This document shows, one piece after another, positions 33,504 through 59,492 of a stretch of 64,000 nucleotides of DNA. Under the pieces are notes generated by a model. It made no database searches. It was not told where the DNA came from and worked only from the letters and a program-made list of their open reading frames with translations. Location: the NCBI GenBank assembly GCA_038087875.1, contig CM075981.1:744001-808000 (forward strand), in the 5' to 3' direction. This DNA is from Malacoraja senta. Its lineage: Eukaryota. The translations under genes and the position numbers were made by a program. Each line of letters opens with the position of its first letter. Position 1 is the stretch's first letter.

Positions 33504-33580
33504 AACACTCTGCCTCCGGAAGCATCGACCACCAGGGAAGCAACATCCACTGAGATTCCGGGCTCATCGCCTCGATACAG
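33504..33580 (+). CDS. 3' part of the gene A stalk exon (NTLPPEASTTREATSTEIPGSSPRY-R) with intact phase-2 donor
   Basis: Homologous to TTLPQDAPTTKEASSTESHGSILPS-R of gene B; donor CAG|GTCAGT. Confidence 0.7.
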
Positions 33581-34589
33581 GTCAGTGACTCAAAATACCA
33601 ACACAGCCTTGCACAGCTTCACCACAGTGTTAACGGCTGAAGCAAGCAGCCCATGATTAACAAGAAGGATAAATACAATCAGCGAGTTTACTGGCGATCG
33701 CCGTGGGTTATTGTTACTTACTATATCACAGCAGATATTCCCTCCCTCACACATTGGTCAAAAATCATCTTTGTTCCAATCTCCACAGCCTGATCTTCCT
33801 CTCCTGGTGCTGTCCTGGAAGAGTACAGACCAGGTGGCCTTTGCTACATCGGGACAAGGCAGCATTCCTGCTGCCGGACCCGCTGAGTTACTCTAGCATT
33901 TTGTGACTATCTACAACCTTTCTCAGTTGTGAAAGTTTCAGTAGAGGGGAAACGTATCCTGTTGTCGGTAAAATCAGTCCCATTACTTTGAGAAAGCATG
34001 GCTGATCACATTCCAGTCCATTGATAATACTCCTTGGCCCCTGACTAAAGTCACTCTGTCCTTAGTACACCCAGTGGCCCTACCATTGTGAATGCCTACC
34101 CTTATTTGATACCAAAAAGAAATAACTTCACACTTATCACGGTTCAATACCTGCTAGCATTGCTCTGCCCAACATACCAGTTGCTTCTTATCCCTCTGTG
34201 GTCTATGATTATCGTACTTTCCAAAATGATAAAATTTTGGTGTAATCTGTAAACCCGTTAATCATACTTCCAACATTAACATCTAAGGCCGGCAGATGGG
34301 ACTAGTGTAGATAAAGGCATCTTGGTCGGCGTGGTGAAATTGGGTCAAAGGACATGTTTTCGTGCTCTATGTCTGACCACCAACATGAACATCTATGTTG
34401 TTAAAGTATGTAGTCATGGAACACCTCCAAGGAATGGGTGCATGTTGCGATATAAACATCTCACCAATGTCTACGCCACAACCTTGGATCACACTGAATG
34501 ATTCCGTGTGCAATATGATGAAAAAAAATTCCCAGCGTTGATCTGAGATAACTCTGTGTGGAAGTAATAATATTTCCTTGGATTTCCAG

Positions 34590-34701
34590 GGACATCATGT
34601 TGAATGTTCGCCGTGTTTGGGGTGTGTTACGCTGGGTACTCTTTGGAGTTCTGCTTCTCTTCCCGGTTTCCATCAGCTGTGTGACAACTTTTAAAAGGTA
34701 A
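34590..34701 (+). CDS. Activating-type transmembrane exon (DIMLNVRRVWGVLRWVLFGVLLLFPVSISCVTTFKR*)
   Basis: Acceptor gatttccag|G in phase 2, matching the stalk donor; Arg in the N-terminal third of the TM; stop TAA at 34699-34701 if the overlapping GT is not used as a donor. Confidence 0.8.
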
Positions 34702-34795
34702 ATGTTTGCAATCTCTTCACTCTGGTGTTCACATTAAATTCAATTGGAAATGATGGGAATTTACTTTAGAATTATGGAGATAAAGTGTGGACATA

Positions 34796-36359
34796 CAGTG
34801 CCCTCCATAATGTTTGGGACAAAGACCCTTCATTTATTTATTTGCCTCTGTATTCCACAATTTGAGATTTGTAATAGAAAAAAAATCACATGTGGTTAAA
34901 GTGCACATTGTCAGATTTTATTAAAGGGTATTTTTATACATCTTGGTTTCACCATGTAGAAATTACAGCTGTGTTTATACATAGACCCCCCATTTCAGGG
35001 CACCATAATGTTTGGGACACATGGCTTCACAGGTGTTTGTACTTGCTCAGGTGTGTTTAATTGCCTCCTTAATGCAGGTATAAGAACGCTCTCCGCACCT
35101 AGTCTTTCCTCCAGTCTTTCGATCACCTTTGGAAACTTTTATTGCTGTTTATCAACATGAGGTCCAAAGTTGTGCCAATGAAAGTCAAAGAAGCCATTAT
35201 GAGACTGAGAAACAAGAATAAAACTGTTAGAAACATCAGCCAAACATTAGGCTTACCAAAATCAACTGTTTGGAACATCATTATGAAGAAAGAGAGTACT
35301 GGTGAGCTTACTAATCGCAAAGGGACTGGCAGGCCAAGGAAGACCTCCACAGCTGATGACAGAAGAATTCTCTCTATAATAGAGAAAAAAAACACTCTTC
35401 AGGTGTCAGGTGTGGATTTGTCAATGACCACTGTCCGCAGAAGACTTCATGAACAGAAATACAGAGGCTCCACTGCAAGATGCAAACCACTGGTTAGCCA
35501 CAAAAATAGGATGGCCGGGTTACAGTTTGCCACAAAGTACTTAATAGAGCAACCACTGATCTGGAAAACGATCTTGTGGACAGATGAGACGAAGATTAAC
35601 TTTTTTCAGATTAATGGCATGAGCAAAGTATGGAGAAGAGGAGGAACTGCCCAAGATCCAAAGCATACCACCTCATCTGTGAAACACGGTGGTGGGGGTG
35701 TTATGGCCTGGGCATGTATGGCTGCTGAAGGTACTGACTAACTTATCTTCATTGATAAGTGAGTCAGTACCTTCAAATGCTTCAAAACCCATAGGCTGAC
35801 AGTTCATTCTGCAGCAAGACAATGATTCCAAACATATTGCAAAAGCAACAAAGGAATTTGTCAAAGCTAAAAAATGGTAAATTCTTGAGTGGCCAAGTCA
35901 TTCTGAACCCAATTGAGCATGCCGTTAAGATGCTGAAGAGAAAACTGAAGGTGACTCTCCCCCAAAACAAACATAATCTAACGATGGCTGCAATACAAGC
36001 CTGGCAGAGCATCACCAGAGAAGACACCCAACAACTGATGATGTCCATGAATCGCAGACTTCAAGCAGTCATTGCATGCAAAGGATATGCAACAAAATAC
36101 TAAACATGACTACTTTCATTTACATGACATTGCTGTGTCCCAAACATTATGGTGCCCTGAAATGGGGGGACTATGTATAAACACTGCTATAATTTCTACA
36201 TGGTGAAACCAAAATATATAAACATGGCCTTTCCTAAAATCTGACAATGTGCTCATTAACCACATGTGATTTTTTTCTATTACAAATCTCAAATTGTGGA
36301 GTACAGGGGCAAATAAAATAAATGATGGGTCTTTGTCCCAAACATTATGGAGGGCAATG
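34796..36359 (+). mobile_element. Tc1-like DNA transposon, degenerate transposase, long IR/DR-type TIRs
   Basis: TA|CAGTGCCCTCCATAATGTTTGGGAC...GGAGGGCAATG|TA; WTDETK, QQDND and NPIEH motifs in ORFs 35142..35741 and 35822..36103. Confidence 0.93.
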
Positions 36360-36659
36360 TAGGCCCCACAGCCAACCAAGTCCACGCCGAAGAATGATCA
36401 CCCCGTACACTCACACTATCCTACACACGAGGGACAATTTACAATTATACAGAGGCCAATTAACCTAGAAAACTACACGTCTTTAGATTGTGGGGGAAAC
36501 CGAAGCACCCAGAGAAAACCCACGCTGTCACAGACAGAACATACAAACTCCGTACAGACAGCACCCGTAGTCATGATCAAACCCTGGTCTCTGGCGCTGT
36601 AAGGCAGCAACTCTACCGCTGCGCCACTGTGCCGCCCTGGGTCATTTCCTGGGATAAAA

Positions 36660-37054
36660 TTTGATGGGAGAGATTATAAATTGTGTTTTAATTGTTATTC
36701 AAGGAAAAAAACAGCCGAGACCTTGGAGATGGGGTCGGCAGCGGTGGAGGGAGGAGAGGAACAGCGCCGGTGAGCTGGCTGGGTGGGGCCTCACCTCGCA
36801 TGGAGACGGCCGTGGGAGGCGAGGTGTGGTTGGTCGAGGTGTGTGCGGAGTGCGAGTGGGCTGCTGGAGGCCCTGTAGCAGCTGATGGATCGGGTTCCGC
36901 TGGAGGCCCCACAGAGGTCGGGGACGAGCGCGCGGATCGGACACGTCCTGTAGCGGCACAGAGCGGCGGTGGAGGCACCAACAACATCGCCAGGCCAGGC
37001 CGAACCCTGCAACTCCCACCCAGTGCCGTCTCCACGACAGCGGGCCTTTAAGCC
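36660..37054. repeat. Unclassified GC-rich block, duplicated at 61900-62301
   Basis: Close sequence match between the two copies; no coherent protein in any frame. Confidence 0.5.
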
Positions 37055-40059: not shown

Positions 40060-40259
40060 NNNNNNNNNNNNNNNNNNNNNNNNNNNNNNNNNNNNNNNNN
40101 NNNNNNNNNNNNNNNNNNNNNNNNNNNNNNNNNNNNNNNNNNNNNNNNNNNNNNNNNNNNNNNNNNNNNNNNNNNNNNNNNNNNNNNNNNNNNNNNNNNN
40201 NNNNNNNNNNNNNNNNNNNNNNNNNNNNNNNNNNNNNNNNNNNNNNNNNNNNNNNNNNN
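40060..40259. other. Assembly gap (200 N)
   Basis: N run. Confidence 1.
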
Positions 40260-40321
40260 AATGAGGAAGAGGACAACTCAAACGCAGTGCAGGGACCAAA
40301 CCGATCCAACGTAGCCGAGAC

Positions 40322-40418
40322 ATGGCGGTGGGACAGGGAGAATTCACCCACCAGAAACGTCCCAGATCCAGGGGAACAGTCGTTCTGTTGGTTCTTGTCG
40401 CCGTTGGTCTCACATCAG
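40322..40418 (+). CDS. Gene B exon 1, leader (MAVGQGEFTHQKRPRSRGTVVLLVLVAVGLTS-G)
   Basis: ATG, hydrophobic core and phase-1 donor CAG|GTAAAT. Confidence 0.82.
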
Positions 40419-41380
40419 GTAAATTGTTGTTTTACAAAATGCCCTGTTCTTTAAAATTATTTACCAGCGCCTTGAATTATTTGTAACCACGGACCTCTCA
40501 GTACTGTGTGGGGAGCTGATGATAAATTGCTCAACACTCGTTAGTTCCTGTAAAGACTTCCATCAGCGGATGTTGTCGTGTTGTATGCAGCCAAATTGCA
40601 CACAGCTAGCTCCCTGTGGAGAAGGGAGATAACTACCTACAGCTTGCCTGGCCTTGTGGACCTCATTGAAACTTACCATATAGTGCAATGCCTGGATGGA
40701 GTGGATGGGGTGAGGAAGTTTCCACGGGTGGGAGAGTCTAGGACCAGAGGTCGCAGCCTCATAATTATAGGACATTCCTTTAGGAAGGAGATGAGGAGGA
40801 ATTTCTTTAGTCAGAAGGTGGTGAAACTGTGGAATTCATTGCCGCAGAATGTTGTGGAGGACGTCAGGATGGATAGATTCTTGATCAGGACTGGTGTCAG
40901 GAGACCTGGGAAAAAGACAGGAGGTTTGAGTTGACAGGGAAAGGTAGATCAGCTATGATTGAATGGAGGAGTAGACTTGATGGGCCAAGTGGCCTAATTC
41001 TGCTCCTAGTACTAATGAACTTATGATCTGTTCTTCAGAATTATTTACCAGCACCTTGAATTATTTTGAGCCACAGAGCAGACTACTGGGCTACGAGCTG
41101 CTAAAGATAAAGTGCTTGCAGACTTGTTCTTTCCTGCACTAATGACTTGTGATGCTGTACACAGCCAAATGGCACACCGCTAACTCCCTGTAGAAAATGA
41201 CCCGACAACTGGCCTTGTTGATTATGGGTGTAGGGGTAACTCTTGCCTTTAGAACCGAGCGTTTGCTCCATTATTCTGGTGCAAACTATCTCCAGGTGAA
41301 CTTTCTCAGTGACTTGACAGCAGATCAGCTAAATGCTTTACCCCTTATATATCTCTTGACTTCCTCCCTCCCTGACTGTT

Positions 41381-41414
41381 GGTCTGAAGAAGGGTGTCGA
41401 CCCGAAACGTCACC
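41381..41414 (+). ncRNA. Minimal type-I hammerhead ribozyme motif (Penelope-type)
   Basis: GGT-CTGAAGA-A-GGGT-gtcg-ACCC-GAAA-CGTC-ACC: intact core, 4-bp stem II, palindromic ACGT stem III, GTC cleavage triplet, GGT/ACC stem I. Confidence 0.6.
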
Positions 41415-43316
41415 CATTCCTTCTCTCCAGAGATGCCGCCTGACCCGCTGAGTTACTCCAGCATTTAGTGTCTATCAAAGACACACGGCACTCCCTCCAC
41501 GCATTGCAATGGGAAATGTTGAACCTGAACCTTAGCACATTCAAAGAAAAAACCTGTGAAAGCCAGCCATTGGGAATATGCGGGCATCTCAAATGAGGAA
41601 GCACCAGAGAGACTGTCCAATTTAGCATGTGGAGAAGTTGTGGTAATCTCTCCCTTCTGAGAAAAAACAGCTGCCTTACAACAGACTCTGCTGCTCCAGC
41701 TGTTCTTCACACCGTGCTTTCCCCAGCCTCTGAGTTCTCCTTCAAGGCATTTGTCTTGTGGCTTGTGAACGGACCTGGAGTGATCTGATGATGTGTCTCC
41801 ACCCCAGCAACTGAATCTGCAGAGTTTCACATGTGTTCGAGGCATAGAGTGATACAGTGTGGAAACACTCCCTTCAGCCCAACTTGCCCACACCGGCTAA
41901 CATGTATCAGCAACACTAGTCCCACCTGTCCATGTTTGGTCCATGTCCCTTCAAACCTATCCTATTCCATGTACCTGTCTAACTGTTTCTTTAACGATAG
42001 GAAAATCCCAGCCTCAACTACCTCCTCTGGCAGCTTGATCCATACACCCACCAGCCTTTGTGTGAAAAAGACACCTCATGATTATTCCAGGTGGACGTGG
42101 AGTTTGAAACATCAGTGGCAGATCCAGCTTCCACCACAGGCCGGGAAGTTTAGTTCAATGGGGCACAAAGTGCTGGCGTAACTCAGTAGGTCAGACAGTA
42201 TATCATGGTCTTGACTTAAAACGTCACATATCCATGTTCTCCAGAGATGCTGCCTGACCTGATGAGTCACCACTGGCACCACAGGCAACTGGATATTCAG
42301 CTTTAGTAAAGCACAAAGTGCCAGATTAAGTCAGCAGGTCAGGCAGCATCTCTGGAGAACATCGATAGGTGACGTTTTGGGATGAGACCTGAATAAATGG
42401 TAGGCCAGATGAGGAAAATCCTTTTCAACCCGAGATGTGAATCTGTAGAATTCTCTGCCACCGAGGGCAGTGGAGGCCAATTCACTGGATGTATTCAAGA
42501 GTGAGTTAGATATAGCTCTTAGGGCTAATGGCATCATGGGATATGGGGAGCAAGCAGAATGGTACTGATTTTGGATGATCAGCCATGATCATATTGAATG
42601 GCAGTGCTGGCTCGAAGGACCGAATCGCCTACTCCTGCTCCTATTTTCTATGTTTATATGTTTCTATGAATCGTCACCTTTCCACTTTCTCCAGGGATAG
42701 TTCCTGACCCATTGAGTTACTCCAGCACTTTGTGTCCTTTTGTGTATTAACCAGCATCTGCAGTTCCTAGTTTCTACTAGTTCAATGGGGAAGTGGGTTG
42801 TAGTGAGATTGAACACAGGGTGGGTCAGAGTGAGAGACAGGTTGGCTTCCTGTCACATGACCACCACTCAGGTCAAGCCACGCCCACAGGGAAGGAGGAT
42901 CTGGGCGCCAGATAGATTCAGAAGCAGTTCTGCTTTCACTGGAACTTGGGGAACAATCCCAGTGAAATGGGAATTAACACCTGCGGGAAAAGCATTAAAG
43001 TGCAACAGAATCTATGCAAAAGAAGAAACACAAAATGCTGGAGTAACTCAGCGGGACGGGCAGCATCTCTGGAGAGAAGGAATGGGTGAGGAAACATCAC
43101 CCGTCGGTTTCTCCAGACATGCTGCCTGTCCCGCTGAGTTACACCCACTCATTGTATCTATCTTTGGTGTAAACCAGCACCTGCAGTTCCTTGCTACACA
43201 TGATCTATGCGAAACCATGAACCTGTCTGAACAGCACAAATGACATGTTTTTTATTGTTAAACCTCAGCTTGTGTTGCTGCAGTGTGAGTGTTTTTCATC
43301 ATTAATGTGCCCACAG

Positions 43317-43640
43317 GGTCAAGGGGAATAACTGGACCCAAGGAGATGAGGGGAGAGTTGGGGCAGTCGGTCACTGTGGTATGTCCGTATGATCGGGAAT
43401 ACAGTGACTACAGGAAGCGATGGAGTAAAGGTGATTATTACCTGTCATCTTCTACCGTGGTTACTACTGATCACCCACGACAAGCGAGAACATCGATAAA
43501 TGATAACAAAACACAACTGATCGTTTCAGTAACCATCGACAACCTGGTGAAGAGTGATGAAGGACGCTACTGGTGTGTGATAGTAAAGGGAATATTGTCA
43601 ATCAATGAAAAGACCTCCATCTCATTGAAGGTTTATGAAG
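43317..43640 (+). CDS. Gene B exon 2, Ig V-set domain V3, CD300/pIgR-like
   Basis: 324 bp, phase 1/1, open; GQSVTVVCPY..KRW..DEGRYWC. Confidence 0.92.
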
Positions 43641-44976
43641 GTACGTTGACGATCTCTCCTCACTCTCCCAGAAGTGAAAATTACAGCCTGGGAATTCCCG
43701 GACTCGGTCCTGATAGGGACTCGACGCCACTTCCCCGGTTATCCGTGGTTGGGGGGGGGGGGGTGAGGAGGTTTGGGGCAGGTTAGAGGGGGGTAGGGGG
43801 GATCCGCTACATTGGGCCACACCAAGAGCCCACTGTCCCAGGAGCAGTGTGTGTGTGTGTGGGAGGGGGGGGAGCTCATCAACGGGGACTGGCGGTTCTG
43901 CTGCTGACGGCTCATTTCCCCAAAGTCGATCTCTCCGGGACCAGAACCTCTGGTGGCCCCCTCACTGGGGCAGGGGTGGGACTGCCCCCTCACCCTCTCC
44001 CCCTGCCCGTCACTGTCACACCGACCACACACACAACATCTGAAGAAGGTTCCCAACCCAATACATCGTCTATTCATTCCTTCCACAGATGCTGCCTAAC
44101 GTGCTGAGTTACTCCAGCACTTTGTGTTTTGCTCAAGATTCCAGCACCTGCAGTTCATTGTGACTCACAAACTTTGGTGATTCATGAGCTCAGTTTATTG
44201 TTGCCGTCTGTACCGACGTACAGGGAAAAACTTTTACCATGTTTCCAATGAGGGCCAAATCATTGGGTATTTTTAAGGTAGAGATTGACAGGTTCTCAAT
44301 TAGTATGGGTGTCAAGCTATATGGGGAGAAGGCAGGAGAATGGGGTTGAGAGGGAGAGATAGATCGGCCATGATTGAATGGCGGAGTAGACTCAATGGGC
44401 CAAATGTCCTAATTCTGTCCCTATCACATGAACATGATCTAAGAATCATCATGAGATGTGTGATATAGACTTTACACTGTTACACAAACTGTACAAGATG
44501 AAATATATAACGGGTCTGGCAGTATCTGTGGAGAGAGAATGAGAGTTAATGTTTCAGGTAGATACCGCCAACAAAATTGCATTATTTCCAATTCAGTCCG
44601 CGTAATGAAAATAGTCTATGCATGCCCCTGCTCCCAAGTTCTTCTCCAACATAGAAGACATGTGCCTAACTCTAACAGCAGGCAGATAACACAGCCTGCG
44701 GGACTCTGAAGGGCATGAAAGAAGTCTTTGAATGCTTGCGACCATCTGGTGGCATCTTAATGGGTGAGCCTCCTGTCTAGATCAAGAGGCTTGGTCCATC
44801 TATGGTGGCCTCAGAAGGATCTTTGCCCAAATGTCTGGAGTGTGATTCAAACCAAGAATCTCACCGCACAGAGCCAGAGCGCTCCCAACAAGCATCTCCC
44901 ACACCTCACTAAAGTGGCACAGAACGTGCTTTCAGACATTTAATGTTCAAAACTTCATTCTCTTCATCTCCACAAG

Positions 44977-45133
44977 GGACTCGAACAAGCCGCCCAGGCA
45001 TTGTCAACACCACCTCTACAATAATAACCACGAGGACTTCCACCACAACCACTCTGACCACCCTGCCTCAAGATGCACCAACCACCAAGGAAGCAAGTTC
45101 CACTGAGTCTCATGGTTCAATACTTCCAAGCAG
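44977..45133 (+). CDS. Gene B exon 3, Ser/Thr-rich mucin-like stalk
   Basis: Acceptor ttcatctccacaag|, 157 bp, phase 1/2, donor CAG|GTTAGT; TRTSRPGIVNTTSTIITTRTSTTTTLTTLPQDAPTTKEASSTESHGSILPS. Confidence 0.85.
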
Positions 45134-45736
45134 GTTAGTAACTCGAAGAGCCAACTCAGCCTCACCTGAGAACAAATTAGTTAAGTTCAGTTCAGCTCAG
45201 TTAAAAGATGCAGCGTGGAAATAGACCCTTTGGCCCACCGAATCCGCTCTGAGCAGCGATCACCCCATACACCAGTTCTGTTCTACACACTAGGGGCAAT
45301 TTATAGAAGCCAATTATCCTACAAACCCGCACGTCTTTGGAATGTGGGAGGAAACCGGAGAACCTGGAAAAAACTCTTGTGATCACAGGGAGAACGTACA
45401 AACTCTGTACAGACAGCACCGGTAGTCAGGATCAAAGCCAGGTCTCCTGCGCTGTGAGGCAGCAACTCTGCCACTGCGCCACCATGCCGTCCCTAAATGG
45501 TATGGTCTCAATGGGCGAAAGGGCCTGTTCCCATGTCATATCTCTAAACTCTAAACTACTTTATAGTTCCTTAAATACCAATGGAATTATTCATAATGTT
45601 CCAGAATTTAACCTGCACTGCATTCAAGTATAGTTCCACATTTTTACTTTCCGGATCAAAACGCATGGTTCGTTACTGGGGGGGGAATCAGTCCTATTAC
45701 CATGAGCTCGTCATTGTTTTTTCTTGTATTTTGCAG

Positions 45737-45852
45737 GGAGGCAGGTACATTTCCACAGCATGTTGTTCTGTCGATTGCCTTGACAATTGTCTTTCTTCTG
45801 TTCATCACTGCCATTATCCTATGTGTAAAAATGAGGCAGAAAAAGAAAACTG
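45737..45852 (+). CDS. Gene B exon 4, uncharged transmembrane segment and basic stop-transfer
   Basis: Strong acceptor ttttttcttgtattttgcag|, phase 2/1, donor CTG|GTAAGT; EAGTFPQHVVLSIALTIVFLLFITAIILCVKMRQKKKT. Confidence 0.88.
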
Positions 45853-46589
45853 GTAAGTTCCGTTGAAGGTACGTAAATATCAAGGGGCACTCTTGTTGAT
45901 TAAAAAAGATTTGGCACTTCTCTCTGAGGTGCCTTTCACAAACTCAGACCATTCACCTAGCGTATAACAGCAGGGAAAGATACCAAGTGCTGGAGTAACT
46001 CAGCGGGTCAGGCAGCATCTCTGGAGAACATGGACAGGTGACATTTCAGGGCGGCACAGTGGCAAAGTGGAGAGGTGCTGCCTTACAACGCCAGAAACCC
46101 GGGTTCGATCCTGACTATGGGTGCTGTCTGTATGGAGTTTGTACGTTCTCCCTGTGAGCGCGTGGATTTACACCAGAGAGACAGGCCCTTTGGCCCAATT
46201 CGTCCTTACTGACACCCAAGGTGCTTCCCTATGCTAGTCCCACTTACCTGTGCTTGTCCCACATCACTCTTAAAGCTTTCTTCTCCATGTATCTCTCCAA
46301 ATGTCTTTTAAACGATGGAATTGGACTTGCCTTTACTACGTCCTCTGTCGGTTTGATCCGTGTGATGAGAGTGGTCAAATCTGGGGTGAATTGATAGGAA
46401 GATGGGGCGAATAAAATGGGATCGTGGAGATGAATGGAAATGGATGCTTGATGGGCCAGCATGAGCTCAAAGGGCCAAAGGGCCTGCTTCCATACTGATG
46501 GTTCTGTGAAAACCATCTGGTTGGAAGCTGCAATATTAGTCAGAAGTGCGTCAGTCTTATCCAGATTGAACAAGAATGTTTTTATCTGC

Positions 46590-47190
46590 AAATTATCTGA
46601 TTGGTGGTCGATTAGGAAAAGGGGAGATGCAACGAGACCTGAGTGTCATGGTACACCAGTCATTGAAAGTAGGCATGCAGGTGCAGCAGGCAGTGAAGAA
46701 AGCGAATGGTATGTTAGCATTCATAGCAAAAGGATTTGAGTATAAGAGCAATGAGGTTCTACTGCATTTGTACAGGGTCTTGGTGAGACCACACCTGGAG
46801 TATTGCGTACAGTTTTGGTCTCCTAATCTGAGGAAAGGCATTCTTGCCATAGAGGGAGTACAGAGAAGGTTCACCAGACTGATTCCTGGGATGCCAGGAC
46901 TTTCATATGAAGAAAGACTGGATAGACTCGGCTTGTACTCGCTAGAATTTAGAAGATTGAGGGGGGATCTTATAGAAACTTCCAAAATCTTAAGGGGTTG
47001 GACAGGCTAGATGCAGGAAGTTTGTTCCCGATGTTGGGGAAGTCCAGAACAAGGGGTCACAGTTTAAGGATAAGGGGGAAGTCTTTTAGGACTGAGATGA
47101 GAAAATCATTTTTCACACAGAGAGTGGTGAATCTGTGGAATTCTCTACCACAGAAGGTAGTTGAGGCCAGTTCATTTGCTATATTTATGA
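46590..47190 (+). mobile_element. CR1 3' RT fragment
   Basis: ORFs 46576..47010 and 46998..47276. Confidence 0.85.
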
Positions 47191-47225
47191 GGCAGCAACT
47201 CTACCGCTGCGCCACTGTGCCGCCA

Positions 47226-47600
47226 TTAATAATAATAATAATAATAATAAAAATAATAATAACGTTATTTGTATAGCACATTTAAAAACAACTCACGTTG
47301 ACCAAAGTGCTTCACATCAGTGCAGGTACTAATTTGATACATACAACGGTAGACAGACCCAACAATACATAAATAAACTTTACAGCGCCCCCTGAGAGGG
47401 GCTCAAAAACGCTAGCGAGTAGAAATAGGTTTTGAGTCGTCACTTAAAGCAGTCGATGGTGGGGGCAGTTCTGATGAGCAGCGGGATGCTATTCCACAGT
47501 CAGGGGTGCTGCAACCGCAAAAGCGCGGTCACCCCTGAGCTTAAACCTGGACCGCGGGAAATTTACTAGCCCCAAGTCGGCCGACTTGAGGGACGGAGGC
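47226..47600 (-). mobile_element. L2-clade LINE 3' end with (TAT)n tail
   Basis: Minus strand reads gtgaagcactttggtcaac..aaatgtgctatacaaataacg followed by (TAT)n, as in fish L2 tails. Confidence 0.55.
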
Positions 47601-48019
47601 ATTCCCCTGCTACTTTTCCTCCATGCAATACATTATATTAGATAGACACATCCTTCTCTCCAGAGATGTTGCTTGTCCCGTTGAGTTACTCCAGCATTTT
47701 GTGTCTACCTTCGGTGTAAACCAGCATCTGCAGTTCCTTCCTACACAGATTATATTAGAATTGCGGGAAGTAACTTCATGAAAACATATTTGTCCTGCAT
47801 CCAATCCTCCTCCGCAAAGAGTGAACCGCACAACTGTGCCTTACAGCGCCAGAGACCAGGGTTCGATCCTGACTATGGGTCCGGTCTTTATGGCGTTTGT
47901 ATGTTCTCCCCATGACCGCATGGTTTTTCACCGAGAACTTTGGTATCCTCCCACACTCCAAAGATGTACAGGTTTGTAGATTAATTGGCTTGGTAGATAT
48001 GTAAATTGTATACAGACCA

Positions 48020-48860
48020 CCAAACAGCAGTAGGGAGATTCGGGATAGCTTCATGCAGGAAATTAGGGATGCATGTAGCAAAGGTACAGCGGTTATCATG
48101 GATAAATTTAGACTGGGCCAACCAAATTGGTAACAACACTGAGAAGGAGGATTTCCTGGAATGTATACGGGATGGGTTTTTAAACCAATATGTAGAGGGC
48201 AGGCCATCCTAGACTGGACATTGTGTAATGAGGAAGGTTTAGCGATCTTGTTGCGCAAGGCAACAGGGACCATAATATAGTGGAATCCTGCATTAGGATG
48301 GAGGGTGACATGGTTAATTCAGAGACTAGGGTCCTAAATTTGATTAAAGGAGACTTTGAAGGTATGAGACGGGAATTGGCTAGGATAGACTGGCAAACTA
48401 TACTTGACAGTGGAGATGCAATGGCAAAGATTTAAAGACCGCAAGGATGAACTCCAGAAATTGTTCATCCCTGTCTGGCGAATAAATAAAACTGGGAAGG
48501 CGGCTGACGAGGAAGTCAAGGATAGTGTTAAATCCATGGAAGAGGCATATATATTGGCCAGAAGAAGTGGCAAACCAGAGGCCTGGGAGAAATTTAGAAC
48601 AGAGAAGGACAAAGGGGTAAATTAAGAGGGGAGGAAATGAGCATGAAAGAAAGCTTGCGGGGAATATAAAAACTGACTGTAAAAGTTTCTTTAGGTATGT
48701 AAAAAGGAAAAGATTAGTGAAGACGAATGTAGGTCCCTTACAGTCAGAGACAGGTGGATTTATAATGGGAAACAAGGGCCTGAAAGAACAGTTAAACAGG
48801 TACTTTGGTTGTGTCTTCACGAAGGAAGACGCAAACAATCTCCCGGAAATACTGTATGAC
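48020..48860 (+). mobile_element. Internally deleted CR1 fragment (endonuclease-linker region)
   Basis: Similar to 23400-24400; ORFs 48006..48212 and 48404..48625. Confidence 0.75.
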
Positions 48861-49165
48861 CCAATCCCACAGACGTGCAGGTTAGTAGGTTAATTTGCCT
48901 CCATAAATTGCCCCACTGCTAACAGTGGCAGAAAATTCCACAGATTCACAACTCTCTGGGTGAAAAGTGTGTCTCTGGGAGAACTAATGTGAACGGGTGA
49001 TCAGTGGTCGGTGGGCCGAAGGGCCTATTTACATATTGTATTTCTAAACTAAGTTTCATGAAAGGGAATCAAGTATGACATCAATGGATAAAATGCAACA
49101 TTATCCTTTGCGTGTTTGACTTCAATGAAGTCCATATAAGAATTAATTATCATTATATTTTTCAG

Positions 49166-49218
49166 GCTCAAATGGCAATAGAATTATAAGTCAGGAAAAT
49201 CCAGCAGGAAGTTTCAAG
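49166..49218 (+). CDS. Gene B exon 5, short cytoplasmic exon (G-SNGNRIISQENPAGSFK)
   Basis: Acceptor atatttttcag|, donor AAG|GTAAGG; phase 1/0 exactly bridges exons 4 and 6. Confidence 0.72.
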
Positions 49219-50159
49219 GTAAGGCAATGCCGCAGCATGTTGTAGCCCCAGGGAAATAAAACAACCTTACTGGAGGTCTCCCTTGAAGGGTCGCACATCA
49301 CATGACATATCGATCACTTGATCGCCCATAACATGGCACCTCAATGATCGAGTGCCCATCCTTGGCCTTCTCCACTGCCTTGGTGAGGCCAGGCACAAAC
49401 TCAAAGCACAACATCTGGGTTAGATTCTGACCACGGGTGCTGTCTGTGTGGAGTTTGCAGGTTCATGCTGTGACCACCTGGGTTTCGTCTGGATGCTCCG
49501 GTTTCCTCCCCCATCCAAAAGACGGGCGGATTTGTAAGTGAATTGCGCTCCATAAATTCCCCCCAGTGGGTAGGGAGTGGATGAGAAAGTGGGATAACAT
49601 AGATCTAAGGTGGACAGGTGATCGATGGTCGCTGTGAGGCAGTAGGTCTACCAGCTGTGTCACTCTGCCCATCCTTTCACTTCCTTTGTTGCCATTAATG
49701 GTCTCTACTGAGTTCACTCCTGTTGTCAGTCGGCAGCACAGTGGCGCAGCGGTAGAGTTACTGCCTCACAGCGCCAGAGACCCGAGTTCGATCCTGACCT
49801 CGGATGTTGTCTGTGCAGTGTTTGTGCGTTCTCCCTGTGACCGCCCGGGTTTTCTCCGGGTGATCCGGTTCGCTCCCACATTCCAATGATGTGCAGGTTT
49901 GTAGGTTAATTGGCTTTTGGAAATTGCCCCCAGTGTGTAGGATGCGAAAGTGGGACAACATGGAACAACTGTTAATGGGTGATCGATGGTCAGAGTGGGC
50001 TTGGTGGGTCAAGGGGTCTGTTTCCATTCAGCATCTCTAAACTAAACTAAACTAAGTAATTATGTTTAGGTCTGAAGAAGGGTCTCGACCCAAAATGCCA
50101 CCTATTCCTTTTCTCCAGAGATGTTGCATGACTCGCTGGTTACTCCAGCATTTTGTGTA

Positions 50160-50305
50160 TGCAGTCCTCAAAAAGGCAGCCAGCATCATCACAGACCCAC
50201 ACCACCCTGGCCGCGCTCTTATTTCACCTCTGCCATCGGGAAGAAGGTACAGGAGACCAAAAACTGTAACATCCAGGTTCAGGAATAGCTTCATCCCTAC
50301 AACCA
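50160..50305 (+). mobile_element. Rex1/Babar-like LINE 3' fragment
   Basis: KKAASIITDPHHPGRALISPLPSGRRYR..SRFRNSFIP. Confidence 0.6.
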
Positions 50306-50456
50306 NNNNNNNNNNNNNNNNNNNNNNNNNNNNNNNNNNNNNNNNNNNNNNNNNNNNNNNNNNNNNNNNNNNNNNNNNNNNNNNNNNNNNNNNNNNNNNN
50401 NNNNNNNNNNNNNNNNNNNNNNNNNNNNNNNNNNNNNNNNNNNNNNNNNNNNNNNN
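50306..50456. other. Assembly gap (151 N)
   Basis: N run. Confidence 1.
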
Positions 50457-50773
50457 AGATGCTGGAAAAATCGAAGGTAGACAAAAATGCTGGAGAAACT
50501 CAGTGGGTGAGGCATCATCTATGGACTGAAGGAAATAGGTGACGTTTCGTGTTGGAAATGTCAAAGCAGCCCTTGCTTTCCCTCTCTCTCCATCCCTTCC
50601 CCCTTCCCAGTTCTCCCACCAGTCTTACTGTCTCCGACTACATTTTATCTCTGTACCGCCCACTCCCCTGACATCAGTCTGAAGAAGGGTCTCGACACGA
50701 AACGTCACCTACTCCTTCGCTCCATAGATGCTGCCTCACACGCTGAGTTTCTCCAGCATTTTTGTCCACCTTC
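50457..50773 (+). mobile_element. Penelope-derived foldback element with hammerhead core, just upstream of the ITIM exon
   Basis: Imperfect inverted arms ~50475-50552 and ~50698-50773; CTGAAGA..GAAACGTC at 50679-50706. Confidence 0.65.
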
Positions 50774-50817
50774 TGACACTATCTTTAAGTAATTATGTTT
50801 CTCACTTGATTCCAAAG

Positions 50818-50973
50818 GAAACCCCTGTCATTTATACCACCGTGACAACCCGTTCTCCAGCTAGCATGGAGAATACTTACATGAACCTTCAGGATATGAA
50901 CACACAAGGACAAGCCAAGAGGCAAGGTGCTGCAGAGATTGTGTACGCAACAATTCTCACTGATAATAATTAA
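50818..50973 (+). CDS. Gene B exon 6, ITIM-bearing tail
   Basis: Phase-0 acceptor ttccaaag|; ETPVIYTTV..ENTYMNL..AEIVYATILTDNN*; two ITIM-consensus motifs and YxN. Confidence 0.85.
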   Translation, partial: ETPVIYTTVTTRSPASMENTYMNLQDMNTQGQAKRQGAAEIVYATILTDNN

Positions 50974-52443
50974 TTCAAGCACCGGAGAACACCAAAAAAA
51001 CATTGGAAACGGACAGTCTGGTAAAATTGTCTTTGCTTACCCACAAATCCAGACATTTGTGTTCAGATCTCACCAAGAACAGTGCATGGTCATCAAGATA
51101 ACTGCAGATTTTGGTAATCTGATAAAGAGAGAACATAGGAAAGTACAACAGGCCCTTCGGCCCACAATATCCGTGCCGAAAAAGAAAAATGCGAAAACAT
51201 TCGGCAGGTCAGGCAGCAACTGTGGAGATAGAAACAGAGATAACACGATAGTTCGATGACCTTAAGGTGAGAGGGGAAAGATTTAGTAGGAACCCGAGGT
51301 TCAACTTTTTCAATCAGAGGGTGGTGGGTGTAAGGAACAAGCTGCTAAAGGAGTTAGTTGAGGCAGGTACTTTAACAACATTTAAAAGACTTTTGGACAG
51401 GTACATGGATAGGACAGGTTTAGAGGGATATGGGCCAAAAGCGGGTAGGTGAGACTATCATAGATGGGTTGGCAAGGACAAATTGTGCCAAATGGCCTGG
51501 TTCGAGCTGTTTGTCTCTCAGACTATATTTTGTATTCAACGTAAGAAAATAAGAGCAGAAATAGGCCATTCAGCCCTTCAAGCCAATTCTGCCATTCAAC
51601 ACAATCATGGCTGATCTGCCTCCAACCTCATCTCCTCTCCTGTGCCAGTTCCTCAATGCCCTCGATTCCCTGCCCCTTCAAACTCCTCTTTAAATACCCC
51701 TAATGATCCAGCCTCAATAACCCCCCAGTAGCAGGCTATTCCAGGGATTCATCACTCCGTTCCGCTTTCCTCAAATGCCGCCGAACATGTTGAGATTTTC
51801 CACCATTTTTCTTTTGCCTTAATTAGAACAGCTGTGGAATTTGAACTGCTATTAATTTGTGATTTAAAAATAAATATGCATATGTACTGTTGAACACAAA
51901 ACTGCCGGCTTGTTGTTAAAACTCACTGGTTGACTTTCCACCATCCAGTTTACCAAGAAAAACAGTACTGTTACTAAGTCATAGTAACAGTAACTTGCCC
52001 ACATCAACCAACATGCCCCATCTACACTAGTCCCACCTGACTATGTTTGGCCAATATCCCTCTAAACCTGTCCTACCCAGGTACCTGTCTAATTGTTTCT
52101 TAAACGTTGCAATAGTCCCTGCCTCAACTACCTCCTCTGGCACCTTGTTCCATACACCCACCACACTGTGCTTGATTGTCAGACCTATATAGAATATGGA
52201 ATATAGAAAGGAACAGCACAGGAGCAGGCCCTTCGGCCCACAATGCAGGTGCTGAGCATAGTGTCACGATGAACTAAACTCATCTTCCTGCACATGATCC
52301 ATAACTCCCCCCCCCCCCCATTTCCACATATCCACGTGCCAATCTAAAAGCCTCTAAAGAATGCTACTATCTCATTTGCTGCCATCACCATCCCTGACAG
52401 CACGTTCCAGGCAACTCACACATGCTTGGATTAAGCACCATGA

Positions 52444-52765
52444 GGGCAGCACGGTAGCGCAGTGGTAGAGTTGCTGCCTTACAGCGCTTGCAATGCCAGA
52501 GACACGGGTTCGAACCCGACTACGGGTGCCGTCTGTACGGAGTTTGTACGTTCTCCCCGTGACCTGCATGGGTTTTCTCCGAGACCTTCAGTATCCTTCA
52601 ACACTCCAAAGACGTACAGGTTTGTAGGTTAATTGGCTTGGTATAAATGTAAATTGTCACCAGTGTGTGTAGGAATAGATAGTGTTAATGTGCGGGGATC
52701 GCTGGTCGGCATGGACTCGTTGGGCCGAAGGGCCTGTTTCTGCGCTGCATCTCTAAACTAAAAAA
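52444..52765 (+). mobile_element. tRNA-derived SINE (HE1-like); representative of roughly 20 copies or fragments in the window
   Basis: A box TAGCGCAGTGG, B box GGTTCGAACCC, core and ctaaacta tail. Confidence 0.85.
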
Positions 52766-54429
52766 CGAAACTAACCATCTACCATATCTATGTCCATTTT
52801 TGTAGACCATCTCCGATGTTTTTTTTATTCTCATGTGTACCAAGGACACGGTCATGTGTACCAAGGGTATCATGCGTTCTCCCCATGACCTGCGTGGGTT
52901 TTGTCCAGGTGCTCAGGTTTCCTCCCACACTCCACAGACTTACAGGTTTACAAGACAATTGGCAGGGTGTAAATTGCCCCCAGTGTGTGTAGATTAGTGT
53001 GCGGGGATAGCTGGGCAGCACAGACCCGGTGGGCCGAAGGGCCTGTTTCCGCGCTGTACCTCGAAACTAAAAGTCCCCTCAACTCCTCCCAAGATCCCAG
53101 ACTAGATCAACAGTTGTTTGAGAAGTCAGCTGCAGGGTTGTGGAACTATTCTTGCACTGCTCCTGGGAAGGTTTTCACGTGCTTTCCAGACTATTGCTTT
53201 AATTTCCCTGTTTTTAATTTTGTGAATGTTTCCGTGAAGTGCAGTGGCTTGCAAATATGTGTATGAGGTACAAGAATCGCAAGTGAGAGATTATGTAAAT
53301 ATGTACAAATGTTTTGTAATGAAACATCTACAGATGACATGGGAGATGTTGTAAGCATACAATAAAGTACACTAGTCTTCTGAATACCTGGTGAGCCCAA
53401 GATCTTTACGACTTTGTCGAAGGTGGTTTTGCGGATGGACGTAGCACACAGAACAGCACAGGAACAGGCCCTTCGGTCCACTTTGTCCATGCCAAACATT
53501 AGGCAAAGTTAAACTGATCTCATCTGCCTGCACATAGTCCACTATCCCTCCACCCCCTGCATATCTATGTGCCTATCTTATACTTGTACTGAGATGTATA
53601 CAAAAATGAATTTCACTGTACCTCGGTACATGACAAATAAAGTACCATACCATACTATCTAAAAGCCTCAGTGGGCCGAAGGGCCTCCATCTCCAAACTC
53701 TAAAGCAAAGAGTGCCACAGCAGTAGATTTGCTGCCTCATGGCGCAGGAGACCCAGGTTCGATCCTGACCATGGGTGCTGTCTCTCTGGAGTTTGTACGT
53801 TTTCCCTGTGATCTCGTGGGTTTTCTCTCGCTTCCTCCCGCATTCCAAAGACGTGCAGGTTAATTGGCTACTGTAAATTGCCCCTAGTGTGTAGGATAGA
53901 ACTAGTGTATGGGTGATCGCTGGTCGATGTGGACTCAGCGGGCCGAAGGACCTGTTTCCACACTGTATTTCTAAACTAAACTCAACTACAGCATTACATA
54001 TCAGATGGGGAATGGGATAAATCAATAGCTGAAGGAGTCAGCTGCATCAGAAGACCATCGGTGTACAATCGAGCTTCACAAAGCATGTGGTAAGAGAAGT
54101 TGTTTCAATTGCAATGTCCTCCAAACAGCAACCCTACCGCTGCGCCACCATGCTGCCCCGTGAAAAAGCCTCTGGTTATTAAACTGGAAGAGACATGGGG
54201 GCGGCACAAAATGTGGTGAGTGATAGGTGGATACAGGTGAGGAGAGGGGGGGGGGGGGTTGATTTAATGCAATTATTGATTACTGACCATCCAAACAACA
54301 TTAAATATTTAAACACATCACAGATTTCCGCTGGCAATTCTCATTGCTCTTGTTCGTCTAACAAAAGGAGAACAGACACATTTAGTTGCATTTAACAGTT
54401 TTTCATGTTTACAAGAAATTTAAAAAACG

Positions 54430-55640
54430 CCTCACTGACCTAAATCCAACTCTCTTGAATACATTCAGTGAATTGGCCTCCACTGCCTTCTATGGTGGAG
54501 AATTCCACAGATTCACAACTCTCTGGGTGAAAATGTTTTCCCTCATCTCAGTCCTAAATGGCCTACCACTTATTTTTAAACTATGACCCCTGGTTCTGGA
54601 ATCCCACAACATCGAGAACATTTTTCCTGCATCTAACCTGTCCAATCCTCTAAAAATTTTATATGTTTCTATAAGATCCCCTCTCTTCCTTCTAACTTCC
54701 AGCGAATACAAGCCCAGTCGACACATTCTTTCATGATATGTCAGTCCCGTCATCCTGGGAATTAACCTGGTGAACCAAAACTGGACATAATACTCCAGGT
54801 GTGGTCTCATCAGGGCCATGTACAACTGCAGTAGGACTTCCTTGCTCCCAAACTCAAATCCTCTCGCAATGAAGGCCAACATGCCATTGGCTTTCTTCAC
54901 TGCCTGCTGTACCAGCATGCATACTTTCAGTGACTGATGTACAAGCACACCCAGGTCTCGTTGCACCTCCCCTTCTCCTAATCTGACACCATTCAGATAA
55001 TAATCTGTTCTTGCCACCAAAGTGGATAACCTCACATTTATCCACATTATACTGCATCTGCCATGCTTCTGCCCACTCACTCAACCTGTCCAAGTCACCC
55101 TGCAGCCTCATAGCATCCTCCTTGCAGCTCGCACTGCCACCCAGCTTTGTGTCATCCGCAAACCTAGTGTTGTTACATTTAATTCCCTCGTCTGAATCGT
55201 TAATATATATTGTAAATAACTGGGATCCCAGCACCGAGCCTTGCATCGCCCCACTAGTCACTGCCTGCCATTCTGAAAAGGACCCGTTAATTCCTACCCT
55301 TTGCTTCCTGTCTGCCAACCAGTTCTCTATCCATGTCAATGCCCCACCTCCAATATCATGTGCTCTAATTTTGCACACTAATCTCTTGTGTGGGACCTTG
55401 TCAAAGGCTTTTTGAAAGTCCAGATACTCCACATCCACTGGCTCTCCCTTATCCATTCTACTTGTTACATCCTCAACAAATTCCAAAAGATTAATCAAGC
55501 ATGATTTCATAAATCCATGCTGACTTTGACCGATCCTGTCACTGCGTTCCAAATGCACTGGTATAACATCCGTAATAATCGATTCCAGCATCTTCCCCAC
55601 TACCAATGTAAGACTAACTGGTCTTTTATTCCTCGTTTTC
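54430..55640 (-). mobile_element. CR1 LINE fragment (RT to near the 3' end)
   Basis: ORFs 54854..55642 (FADD) and 54490..55080. Confidence 0.88.
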
Positions 55641-58600
55641 ACATTCTTGAGTGGTCCCCGTAACCTTTGACTCTCTTACCCTGAGTCAATCATGCTTACA
55701 ATCTTCGCAATGTAAAGTTCTGCAATTGGAGCTCTCGTTCCTGGTCACACTACACTTGACACTCTCCCAGCACCGCTGACATGCAGTAAATGATTGCATT
55801 CATTGCACAACCACCATTTTTACTCATACCAATAAAAAATTGCTCAAAACTGCAAACCAAACCAAAATTGTCCCATTGAAATTCAAGGCACAGTACTCTC
55901 CTTATTACTGAAAGACCACTCAGCTGACACTGGCATTTCTAAGTTTACTTTAGAGGAACAGTGGGGGTGGAGGCCGGTTCTCTGGATACTTTCATGAGAG
56001 AGCTAGATAGGGCTCTTAAATATAGCGGAGTCAGGGGATATGGGGAGAAGGGAGGAATGGGGTACTGATTGGGGATGATCAGCCATGATCACATTGAATG
56101 GTGGTGCTGGCTCGAAGGGTCGAATGGCCTACTCCTGCACTTATTGTCTATTGTCTATTGTCTATTGAAACAAGCCCCTCGTACCACCACGTCCCACACA
56201 CTAACACCATCCTACACATCAGGAACAATTTACAATTATACCAAGCCCATTAACCTACAAACCTGCACATCTTTGGAGTGTGGGAGGAAACTGGAGATCC
56301 CGAAGAAAACCCACGCAGGTTACAGGGAGGACGTACAAACTCCATACAGACAAGCATCCGTAGTTAGGATCGAACCTGGGTCTCTGGTGCTGTAAGGCAG
56401 CAACTCCACCACTGCGCCCCAAGATATTATGATACCTCATGATATTCCAAGTCTGTCTACAGTGAGATACAAGAGGACCCTCATACCTGGTCTACTCCAT
56501 CCATGGAGGTCAAGATCACATTGACTCTCATCTTCCTAGTCATAGGATCTGACCATCGTGCAGCATGTCTCCGCAGCATCAGAGAGGTTATCATGGTACT
56601 GAATTAGAATCCTAGACTCATAGTTATATAGCATGGAAATAGACCTTTCACTCATCCATGCTGCCCAAAATGCCCCACATGAGTAGTCCCATTTGGCCGC
56701 ATTTGATCCATACCCCTCTAAACCATTCCTATCCATGTACCTGTCCAATTGTCTTTTAAATGTTGTTACAGTAGGTGCCTTAGCTACCTCCTTTGACAGC
56801 TCGTTCCATATACCCACCACATTCTGAGTGAAAAGTTTGCCCCTCAGGTTCCTATTAAATCCCTCCCCCCTCAATTTAAACGTCCTCTGGATTTTGATTC
56901 CCCTTTTACTCTGGGTAAAAGGCTCTGTGAACTCACCCTATAAATTCCTCCTCATGATTGTATACACCTCTATAAGATCACCCCTTAGCCTCCTGTGCTC
57001 CAAGGAATAAAGTCCTAGTTTATCCAAATTTAGTTTAGTTTATCATTGTCACATGTACCAAGGAACAATTATTATTTTTTGTTGCATGCTATCCAGCAAA
57101 GGGACTGTACATGATTGCAATCAAGCCAGCCAGTGTACAGATACGGGATACAGGGAAATACTGTAGGTTTAGTGAAAGTTAAAGTCCAGTAAAGTCCAAT
57201 TAAAGATGGTTCAATGGTCTCCAATGAGGTGGATGGTAGATCAGGATCACTCTCTAGTTAGTAATCAGAAGGTTCCGTTTCATGCTAACATGAAGGAAGG
57301 AAGAAACTCCTTGAATCTGCAAGTGTGCGTTTTCAAACTTCTGTAACTCTTGCCTGATGAGAGAGGGGAGAAGAGGGAGTGGCCAGGGTGAGACACATCC
57401 TCCTTGAAGCTCAGACCTTCGAGTCCTGGCAAAATCCTGATTAATCTTCTCAGCTCTCTTCCCAGCCATAAAGGAATAATTTCAACTGTTTAGGAAGGAA
57501 CTGCAGATGCCGGTTTAAACCGAAGGTAGACACAAAAAGCCGGAGTAACTCAGCGGGTCAGACAGCATCTCTGGAGACAACCCCGTACGCTTGGACTATC
57601 CGACACACTAGGGACAATCTACAACTTAGCGAAGCCAGATAACCTACAAATCCACACGTCTTTGGATGGTGCGAGGAAACCGGAACACACGGAGAAAATC
57701 AAGCGGTCATGGGGGGAACGTACAAACCCCGTACAGACAGCACCCACAGTCACAATTGAACCCAGGTCTCTGGCGCTGTAAATTCAGCAAGTTGTGAAAC
57801 AGGATTTTTGTCAATGTTCCTTATTCTACGTTGGATTACAAAGTATAATTTTTTTTTAAAGTGCATCTCCCAACGCTGATCTTTAAGGAGGACAGGATTG
57901 GGATATGACCACGCAAGCTGTGGATACCCTCACTGGAAACCTGCTTCAGTTCAGCTTGTCTTGTGCCCAAACCTCTGCCAACCACAGTTAATGCCCCAAA
58001 GTGGAACCGTTGACAATGTGCACGCAACAGATTGCAAAACAGGATATGGGTCAATGTTCCTTACTCCATGTCACATTGCAAAGCATTTGTTCATTCGTGA
58101 GGAAGTTTGCACACAGAACAGGTGGTTATAAATCAAACAAATTGGAGACCGCTTCATCGGAAAACAAGGACCTCTCTCTCTCTGGAACCACGATGTTTTA
58201 CATTCTGCTGTTTCTGACTGTGACTTCAAGTAAGTTTTACCACTTAAAGCTGAGATGGACAGATTATTGATTAGTACGGGTGCCAGGGGTTATGGGGAGA
58301 AGGCGGGAGAATGGGGTTAGGAGTGAGAGATAGATCAGCCATGATTGAATGGCGGAGTAGCCATGATGGGCCAAACAACCTAATTCTGCCACATTAACTA
58401 ATGGTCATGGAACCATAGCGCAGTTATATGTTAACACGAAGATTAACTCTTGTTATTTAAATAAGTGATGATACACTGCTGTTCAGCCAAAGGACCAGGA
58501 GCCTAGAAAGGAACCAATTAACTTTACATTTTAGCAAGAGTTAAAATGAACTGTGACAAGAGCATGGGATTTAGCAGAGGATTTAAGAGACTTTCGGACT

Positions 58601-59286
58601 GCCACGTGCATGTAAGAGAAAAAAGACACAAAGTGCTGGAGTAACTCAGCGGGTCAGGCAGCATCCTGTTGACGGTAAAATCAGTGTCAGTACTTTGAGA
58701 AAGCGTGGTTGATCACATTCCAGTCCATTGATAAATACTCCTTGGCCCTGACTAAAGTCCCTCTGTCCTTAGTACACCCAGTGGCCCGACCATTGTGAAT
58801 GTCTACCCTTATTTGATACCAAAAACAAATAACTTCACACTTGTCACGGTTCAATACCTGCTGGCATTGCTCTGCCGAACATACCTGTTGCTTCTTATCC
58901 CTCCGTGGTCTATGATTATGGTACTATCCAAAATGATACAATTTTGGTGTAATCTGTAAACTCGTTAATCATACTTCCAACATTAACATCTAAGGCCGGC
59001 AGATGGGACTAGGCATCTTGGTCGGCGTGGGGAAATTGGGTCGAAGGACATGTTTTCGCGCTGTATGTCTGACCACCAACATGAACATCTAAGTTGTTAA
59101 TGTATGTAGTCATGGAACACCTCCAAGGTATAGGTGCATGTTGCGATATAAACATCTCACCAATGTTGAGACGCCACAACCTTGGATCACACTGAATGAT
59201 TCCGTGTGCAATATGATGAAAATAAATTGTCCAGCGTTGATCTTTGATAACTGTGTGGAAGTAATAATATTTCCTTGGATTTCCAG

Positions 59287-59398
59287 GGACATCGTGCTGA
59301 ATGTTCGCCGTGTTTGGGGTGTGTTACGCTGGGTACTCTTTGGAGTTCTGCATCTCTTCCCGGTTTCCATCTGCTGTATGACAACTTTTAAAAGGTAA
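59287..59398 (+). CDS. Orphan activating-type TM exon (DIVLNVRRVWGVLRWVLFGVLHLFPVSICCMTTFKR*)
   Basis: Intact phase-2 acceptor and open frame; no leader, V or stalk exon of its own between 51 and 59 kb. Confidence 0.65.
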
Positions 59399-59492
59399 AT
59401 GTTTGCAATCTCTTCACTCTGGTGTTCACATTAAATTCAATTGGAAATGATGGGAATTTACTTTAGAAATATAGATATAAAGTGTGGACATA

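Follow-up and report, generated by a model that had tools for sequence, protein, structure and literature searches.

Three described groups of receptors stand closest to the gene reported here: the CD300 family, the modular domain immune receptors (MDIRs) of skates, and pIgR, the polymeric immunoglobulin receptor. In mouse and human CD300f, ITIMs (immunoreceptor tyrosine-based inhibitory motifs) are combined with Grb2 and p85 binding sites (PMC4415817, PMC7247439), and the signalling of this receptor is described in the same two sources. The MDIR paper (Cannon et al. 2006, Immunogenetics 58:362) is cited in PMC3031540, where the MDIR accessions are also given. pIgR transports polymeric immunoglobulin (Ig) and carries 2–5 tandem V domains together with a sorting tail that has no ITIMs. 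Here, we describe a receptor gene from the skate Malacoraja senta (assembly GCA_038087875.1, CM075981.1), located at positions 40322–50973 of a 64,000-nt stretch of forward-strand DNA (744,001–808,000), referred to below as the window. We read it, with a probability of roughly 75%, as an intact type I receptor gene of the elasmobranch CD300-like (skate MDIR-type) multigene family that forms the inhibitory half of a local activating/inhibitory pair. The gene is no novelty of the M. senta genome; it is a local member of an annotated elasmobranch family, and its tail is the standard inhibitory tail of that family.

The gene model was rebuilt directly from the letters of the window, and homology was searched exon by exon as well as with related database proteins as queries. 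Additionally, two relative loci were compared, namely A. radiata L003 (the locus of XP_032898105.1, protein P0152) and L. erinacea L002 (the locus of isoforms X1, XP_055510916.1 or P0161, and X2, XP_055510917.1), with window pieces 40260–45328 and 45369–64000 used in the local comparisons. A first-pass annotation of this DNA had proposed six exons with canonical splice sites and matching phases, joined into a 300-aa type I protein with VIYTTV, TYMNL and IVYATI in its tail. The rebuild bore this out in each part. The exons, all on the plus strand, add up to 97+324+157+116+53+156 = 903 nt including the stop codon, and form an open frame from the ATG at 40322 to the TAA at 50971–50973 that encodes 300 aa without an internal stop. 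All internal boundaries follow the AG/GT rule, and the intron phases are 1,1,2,1,0.

Exon 1 (40322–40418) contains the ATG and the signal peptide MAVGQGEFTHQKRPRSRGTVVLLVLVAVGLTSG, with a hydrophobic core at residues 19–31, and ends at a GT donor in phase 1; this leader is 94–97% identical to the leaders of A. radiata P0153 and P0155. A single V-set Ig domain of the CD300/pIgR type is encoded by exon 2 (43317–43640), as indicated by Pfam, PDB, AlphaFold and Foldseek. It is followed by a mucin-like stalk in exon 3 (44977–45133), in which Ser and Thr make up 48% of the residues and one N-glycosylation sequon is present, and which is 63–67% identical to the stalks of skate relatives. Exon 4 (45737–45852) encodes the transmembrane (TM) helix HVVLSIALTIVFLLFITAIILCV, which spans approximately residues 201–224, includes no charged residue and precedes the stop-transfer sequence KMRQKKK; it shares 81–85% identity with P0154, P0156 and P0152, and the same range applies to the TM exons of the L. 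erinacea, A. radiata and Rhinoraja models. The membrane-proximal cytoplasmic segment GSNGNRIISQENPAGSFK is provided by exon 5 (49166–49218), which ends in phase 0, and the tail with its three motifs and the stop TAA by exon 6 (50818–50973). Hydropathy analysis of the product, from which the leader and helix limits above were taken, revealed two hydrophobic segments, the signal-peptide core and the TM helix. Signal peptide, V-set domain, stalk, uncharged TM helix and a 75-aa tail are all present.

An exhaustive HMMER search recovered 1,542 relatives, among which the 300-aa product of the window was itself absent. The nearest relatives are RefSeq predictions from rays and sharks, labelled “CMRF35-like molecule” or “polymeric immunoglobulin receptor-like”. 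The model is collinear with the RefSeq proteins of sawfish, stingray, skates and sharks, with residues neither missing nor extra.

Two runs of N occur in the window (40060–40259 and 50306–50456), and both bear on the description of the gene as complete in the first-pass annotation. This description holds for the coding sequence but not for the 5′ end, where the assembly gap at 40060–40259, 62 nt upstream of the ATG, hides the promoter. The flanks of this gap map to A. radiata L003 at positions 3021 and 9939, approximately 6.9 kb apart, so that neither the promoter nor the 5′ end is part of the assembly, and the connection with the upstream unit runs across a scaffold join. The second gap closes a lineage-specific, non-coding repeat insertion in intron 5 (49555–50456), which was delimited by flank comparison. 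Window segments 49100–49554 and 50457–50998 match A. radiata L003 at 19283–19737 and 19745–20291 and L. erinacea L002 at 57465–57890 and 57898–58444, so the flanks of the insertion are only 7 bases apart in both species. The intervening 902 bases consist of interspersed repeats, with many dispersed copies, and the gap. An additional exon hidden in 50306–50456, a concern raised with the original model, can be excluded, since the gap is intronic and its flanks are nearly contiguous in two skates; the continuity of the frame is unaffected. Protein alignment with ray relatives likewise revealed no residues lost between exons 5 and 6.

The 75-aa cytoplasmic tail contains exactly three tyrosines, Y255, Y270 and Y292, and each lies in a motif: the ITIM VIYTTV (50827–50844), the YxN motif TYMNL (50875–50889) and the ITIM IVYATI (50938–50955), respectively. 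Both VIYTTV and IVYATI match (I/V/L/S)xYxx(L/V/I), at least one copy of which in the tail characterizes the ITIM receptor class. The order ITIM, YxN, ITIM arises in only 6 of 100,000 shuffles of the tail. At the level of the exon, the tail is 90% identical to L. erinacea XP_055510917.1, 78% to the protein of Rhinoraja longicauda (XP_078276598.1) and 94% to an intact but unannotated A. radiata exon in L003. The stalk, TM and tail regions of seven proteins, from little skate, Rhinoraja, sawfish, stingray, and horn, white and sevengill sharks, were aligned, and the invariant tail columns were V-x-Y-x-x-V, Y-x-N and A-x-E-V-x-Y. It follows that the two ITIMs and the +2 Asn of the central YxN motif have been retained from the time sharks and rays diverged. 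Of 160 family members retrieved, 12 have the ITIM-YxN-ITIM triad, among them proteins from one bird, one lizard and one caecilian. In an hhalign comparison, the elasmobranch stalk-TM-tail profile aligned with caecilian CMRF35-like molecule 8 at 91% probability (pairwise E 1e-6), with the three tyrosines in register. In the tail of human CD300f, the motifs ISYASL, TYCNM and TEYSTI follow one another in a comparable order and at comparable distances, which we take as a lead only.

The V domain points to the same family. Exon 2 matches the Pfam V-set family PF07686 (E 1.4e-12), and in a phmmer search of PDB sequences the best solved relatives were domains of pIgR, together with mouse CLM-1/CD300f, whose single-domain chains scored E 7e-17. 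An AlphaFold model of the exon, built on 23 family sequences, reached a predicted local distance difference test score (pLDDT) of 95. With this model as query, Foldseek matched mouse CD300lf (TM-score 0.93, 34–35% identity) and human IREM-1/CD300f (TM-score 0.91); all of the top 10 Swiss-Prot matches were CMRF35-like molecules (0.90–0.94), with pIgR D1, FCAMR and TREM2 placed below CD300f in the fold ranking. The resemblance to CD300f suggested in the first-pass annotation is thus upheld for the ectodomain, which both by sequence and by fold is matched best by CD300f of mouse and human, and, at the level of motifs, for the tail. The canonical Cys55–Cys119 pair is kept. The second (C-C′) Cys pair of CD300/pIgR domains is absent, and in the alignment Ser replaces Cys (KRWSKG...SSS). 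This pair, in the form W-C...C, is present in the relatives from horn shark, white shark, Mobula and stingray, and missing from all three V exons of the window and from most V domains of skate relatives.

Sequence divergence is distributed unevenly along the gene. The V domain is only 65–74% identical to those of the L. erinacea, A. radiata and Rhinoraja models, and the introns that flank V exons are approximately 86–91% identical across skates. For the V exon, the nonsynonymous rate (dN) is 0.15–0.21 versus a synonymous rate (dS) of 0.05–0.08, and dN/dS lies at 1.8–3.4 against every orthologous or paralogous V exon. These substitution patterns suggest that the V exon is under strong diversifying selection, and that this presumably ligand-binding exon changes rapidly, in contrast to the fixed tyrosine motifs.

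Given this architecture, a mechanism can be proposed. The V domain would bind a putative ligand beside an activating receptor, and Src-family kinases would phosphorylate Y255 and Y292. The two phosphorylated ITIMs could then recruit SHP-1/SHP-2, possibly also SHIP, and dampen signalling through immunoreceptor tyrosine-based activation motifs. Phosphorylated Y270, in the context Y-M-N-L, fits the preference of the Grb2 SH2 domain and might contribute a further output of the adaptor or PI3K type, such as is reported for mammalian CD300f. While the gene itself, its topology and the conservation of its motifs are established from sequence, expression, the ligand and each signalling step, including the recruitment of SHP and Grb2, are inferred.

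The gene has positional counterparts in the two other skates. Window 40260–58665 is collinear with A. radiata L003 (approximately 88–93% nucleotide identity) and with L. erinacea L002 (approximately 84–92%), and the flanks of the gene agree with both loci on either side. The three skates share the exon order leader, V, stalk, TM, first cytoplasmic segment and tail. RefSeq labels the proteins of these loci “CMRF35-like molecule 3” in A. radiata and “pIgR-like” X2/X1 in L. erinacea; the latter label reflects similarity, not function. The number of V exons differs at the orthologous locus, with one in the window (43317–43640), two in A. radiata (L003 13968 and 15106) and three in L. erinacea (L002 51118, 52256 and 53400). 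Among the RefSeq proteins, two V domains are found in A. radiata, three (or four) in L. erinacea and four in Rhinoraja. The protein with the closest V domain, A. radiata P0155, was considered as the ortholog and rejected; its locus belongs to another part of the array, in which only activating units occur, and its RefSeq model spans two units.

Upstream of the gene, a paralogous unit of the activating type was identified at 12235–36773. It begins with a leader at 12235–12331 and includes two V exons (approximately 25908–26231 and 29252–29575) that are 63–71% identical to exon 2. Its stalk is shortened to a remnant at approximately 33498–33580, adjoining an open reading frame (ORF) for the reverse transcriptase of a long interspersed nuclear element (32642–33397). 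An Arg is present in the helix encoded by the TM exon of this unit (34590–34697; VLRWVLFG), and the short end exon begins at approximately 36704. By its sequence features, this unit would be the partner of activating type that is to be expected where paired receptors are clustered.

A first alternative is that the inhibitory exons belong to a larger transcription unit, in which the leader at 12235 and one or both upstream V exons (25.9k and 29.2k) are spliced to 43317 to yield a multi-V inhibitory receptor. All V exons are phase 1-1 and hence interchangeable, the orthologous gene holds 1, 2 or 3 V exons in the three skates, and a multi-V output would suit the name “modular domain” receptor. 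A model of this kind is annotated in L. erinacea, where X1 (L002 10001–58419) opens with two exons of the upstream activating unit, its leader and its first V exon, and continues 36 kb further on with the inhibitory unit, from which it takes three V exons, the stalk, the TM and the ITIM tail. The 36-kb intron of X1 contains an assembly gap, and X1 represents either cross-unit splicing or a prediction artefact. The single-unit isoform X2, which consists of the inhibitory unit alone, is annotated as well. In the window, an ATG and a signal peptide are supplied by a leader exon that belongs to the gene itself and lies 2.9 kb upstream of the V exon, and an assembly gap lies between the two units. 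We therefore regard the larger unit as possible but unlikely.

Several observations weigh against reading the gene as an expressed inhibitory receptor of the CD300 type. The gene is known here from genomic sequence; sequencing runs X1 and X6 contain approximately half of the sampled words of exon 2 and of exon 6, and are uninformative on expression. Neither the tail exon alone nor the tail profile gave a significant match to the solved mammalian CD300f chains. Among the three skates, the tail exon differs by 3–7 substitutions, none of them in a motif, which makes its dN/dS uninformative. The middle motif reads NTYMNL here versus STYMNL in sawfish and stingray; STYMNL agrees with the ITIM consensus as well, and NTYMNL fails it. 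Furthermore, the A. radiata RefSeq model XP_032898105.1 omits its own intact ITIM exon.

The last of these points leads to a second alternative, according to which the main product of the gene has no ITIMs. A candidate alternative acceptor was identified 80 nt past the stop codon (AG at 51051–51052, feature 51051–51103), and exon 5 joined at this site would give a short, tyrosine-free tail and a non-signalling or decoy receptor. P0152, the sole RefSeq protein of the A. radiata ortholog, ends in exactly this way (...SFK|AFAFRSHQEQCMVI). Its end maps to the window from 51053 onward, and the equivalent site (L003 20346) lies 85 nt past the 94%-identical ITIM exon. The acceptor AG and a pyrimidine-rich tract are conserved in the three skates, and the first 130 nt of the 3′ untranslated region are approximately 96% conserved, like the coding part. 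However, the length and stop position of the alternative frame are not conserved, the ITIM exon is used in the RefSeq models of L. erinacea and Rhinoraja, and its acceptor and all its motifs are kept in all three skates. A main product without ITIMs is accordingly very unlikely.

Downstream of the gene, a second intact activating TM exon (59287–59394) and an end exon (61940–62009) were observed. They lie in a block (58666–64000) that is absent from L003 and L002 and is a 93%/87% copy of window 33956–37053. A switch of the receptor gene to the TM exon at 59287–59394 was considered, as the phases fit and the exons are intact, and was rejected because the block is missing in both orthologous loci. 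We judge the block from 58666 onward to be a displaced duplicate in intron 1 of the next gene, and no alternative back-end of the receptor gene. Within the duplicated block, ORFs of Tc1/mariner-type transposases (35142–35741 and 60859–61338) are situated between the activating TM and end exons. The next gene encodes a different Ig receptor, with a leader exon at 58166–58229 (MDLSLSGTTMFYILLFLTVTS in A. radiata and L. erinacea). The ATG of its orthologs is AAG in the window, an in-frame ATG is left at 58193, and its V exon lies beyond the window.

The displaced copy of activating exons is also what lends some weight to a third alternative, namely that the gene is an unexpressed relic of a birth-and-death array, its frame open only through recent duplication. 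Against this, no damage is seen in the six exons, the ten splice signals or any motif, two other skates have intact positional orthologs at approximately 8–9% non-coding divergence, and the excess of replacements in the V exon argues for selection on a protein in use. We consider a relic of this kind highly improbable. Finally, it is scarcely credible that the main role of the tyrosines is that of YxxPhi signals for sorting or endocytosis, as in pIgR, by which a ligand would be internalised or transported without inhibition: YTTV, YMNL and YATI all fit YxxPhi, RefSeq names relatives “pIgR-like” and pIgR domains are among the best sequence matches, but the residues at −2 (V, I) and the +2 Asn, needed by ITIM and Grb2 sites and not by YxxPhi, are invariant in sharks and rays, there is one V domain versus at least two in pIgR, the best fold match is CD300f rather than pIgR, and a gene with a charged TM adjoins as in paired receptors.

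The preferred interpretation, an intact inhibitory receptor beside an activating-type partner, provides, for a cartilaginous fish, an inhibitory CD300-like receptor whose coding model is fully resolved and which can be compared with positional orthologs in two other skates. Its value is comparative, for dating the ITIM and Grb2-site tail of CD300a/f-type receptors, and no new mechanism is introduced. The most useful by-products are the series of one, two and three V exons at one orthologous locus and the conserved acceptor able to delete the ITIMs. A wider proposal, which we hold to be quite unlikely, is that the ITIM-YxN-ITIM tail is an ancestral CD300a/f-type module that predates the split of sharks, rays and tetrapods, and whose use in skates is varied by the number of V exons (1, 2 or 3), a borrowed upstream leader and V exon, and the tyrosine-removing acceptor. 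If true, variable V exons and the ITIM-deleting acceptor would tune ligand reach and signalling strength.

Compared with pIgR, the skate protein shares the V-domain superfamily, and human pIgR D5 and D1 are strong sequence matches, because the pIgR chain has several matching domains. pIgR is defined by at least two V domains in tandem and by sorting signals in its tail, whereas a single V exon lies between leader and stalk in the window and the tail carries ITIMs.

The skate protein also resembles CD300f (CLM-1/IREM-1/CD300LF) and CD300a. In these receptors, as in the skate protein, a single V-set domain of the same fold is followed by a stalk, a TM that lacks charge and a long tail that mixes ITIMs with a Grb2-type site (PMC4415817, PMC7247439), and in both cases the gene lies in a cluster with short-tailed activating relatives with a charged TM. 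Of the features that define the CD300 family, to which the binding of phospholipid or ceramide ligands also belongs, the N-terminal V-set domain and the type I topology with uncharged TM and long ITIM tail were found, and the second intradomain disulfide was not. Unlike CD300f and CD300a, the skate domain has no C-C′ disulfide, and the skate tail has three tyrosines with neither a YxxM (p85) site nor an immunoreceptor tyrosine-based switch motif. The similarity to tetrapod tails is seen only through the profile alignment to the caecilian CD300A-like protein, and within the window, where the receptor array alone was examined, no conserved flanking genes for CD300-cluster synteny were found. The likeness to CD300f rests on fold, sequence and tail design, and is not a claim of orthology to one mammalian CD300 gene.

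The MDIRs belong to the same animal group and likewise constitute a multigene family with CD300/pIgR/TREM-like Ig domains in variable number. This likeness is one of family description. Some MDIRs reportedly have ITIMs and others a charged TM. Their domains are said to be of the I- or C2-set, and the skate domain described here scores best as a V-set. As in an MDIR-type array, the window combines a two-V unit of the activating type with a one-V inhibitory unit, and the orthologs have 2, 3 or 4 V exons; across the window and its orthologs, both types of TM occur and the number of V exons ranges from 1 to 4.

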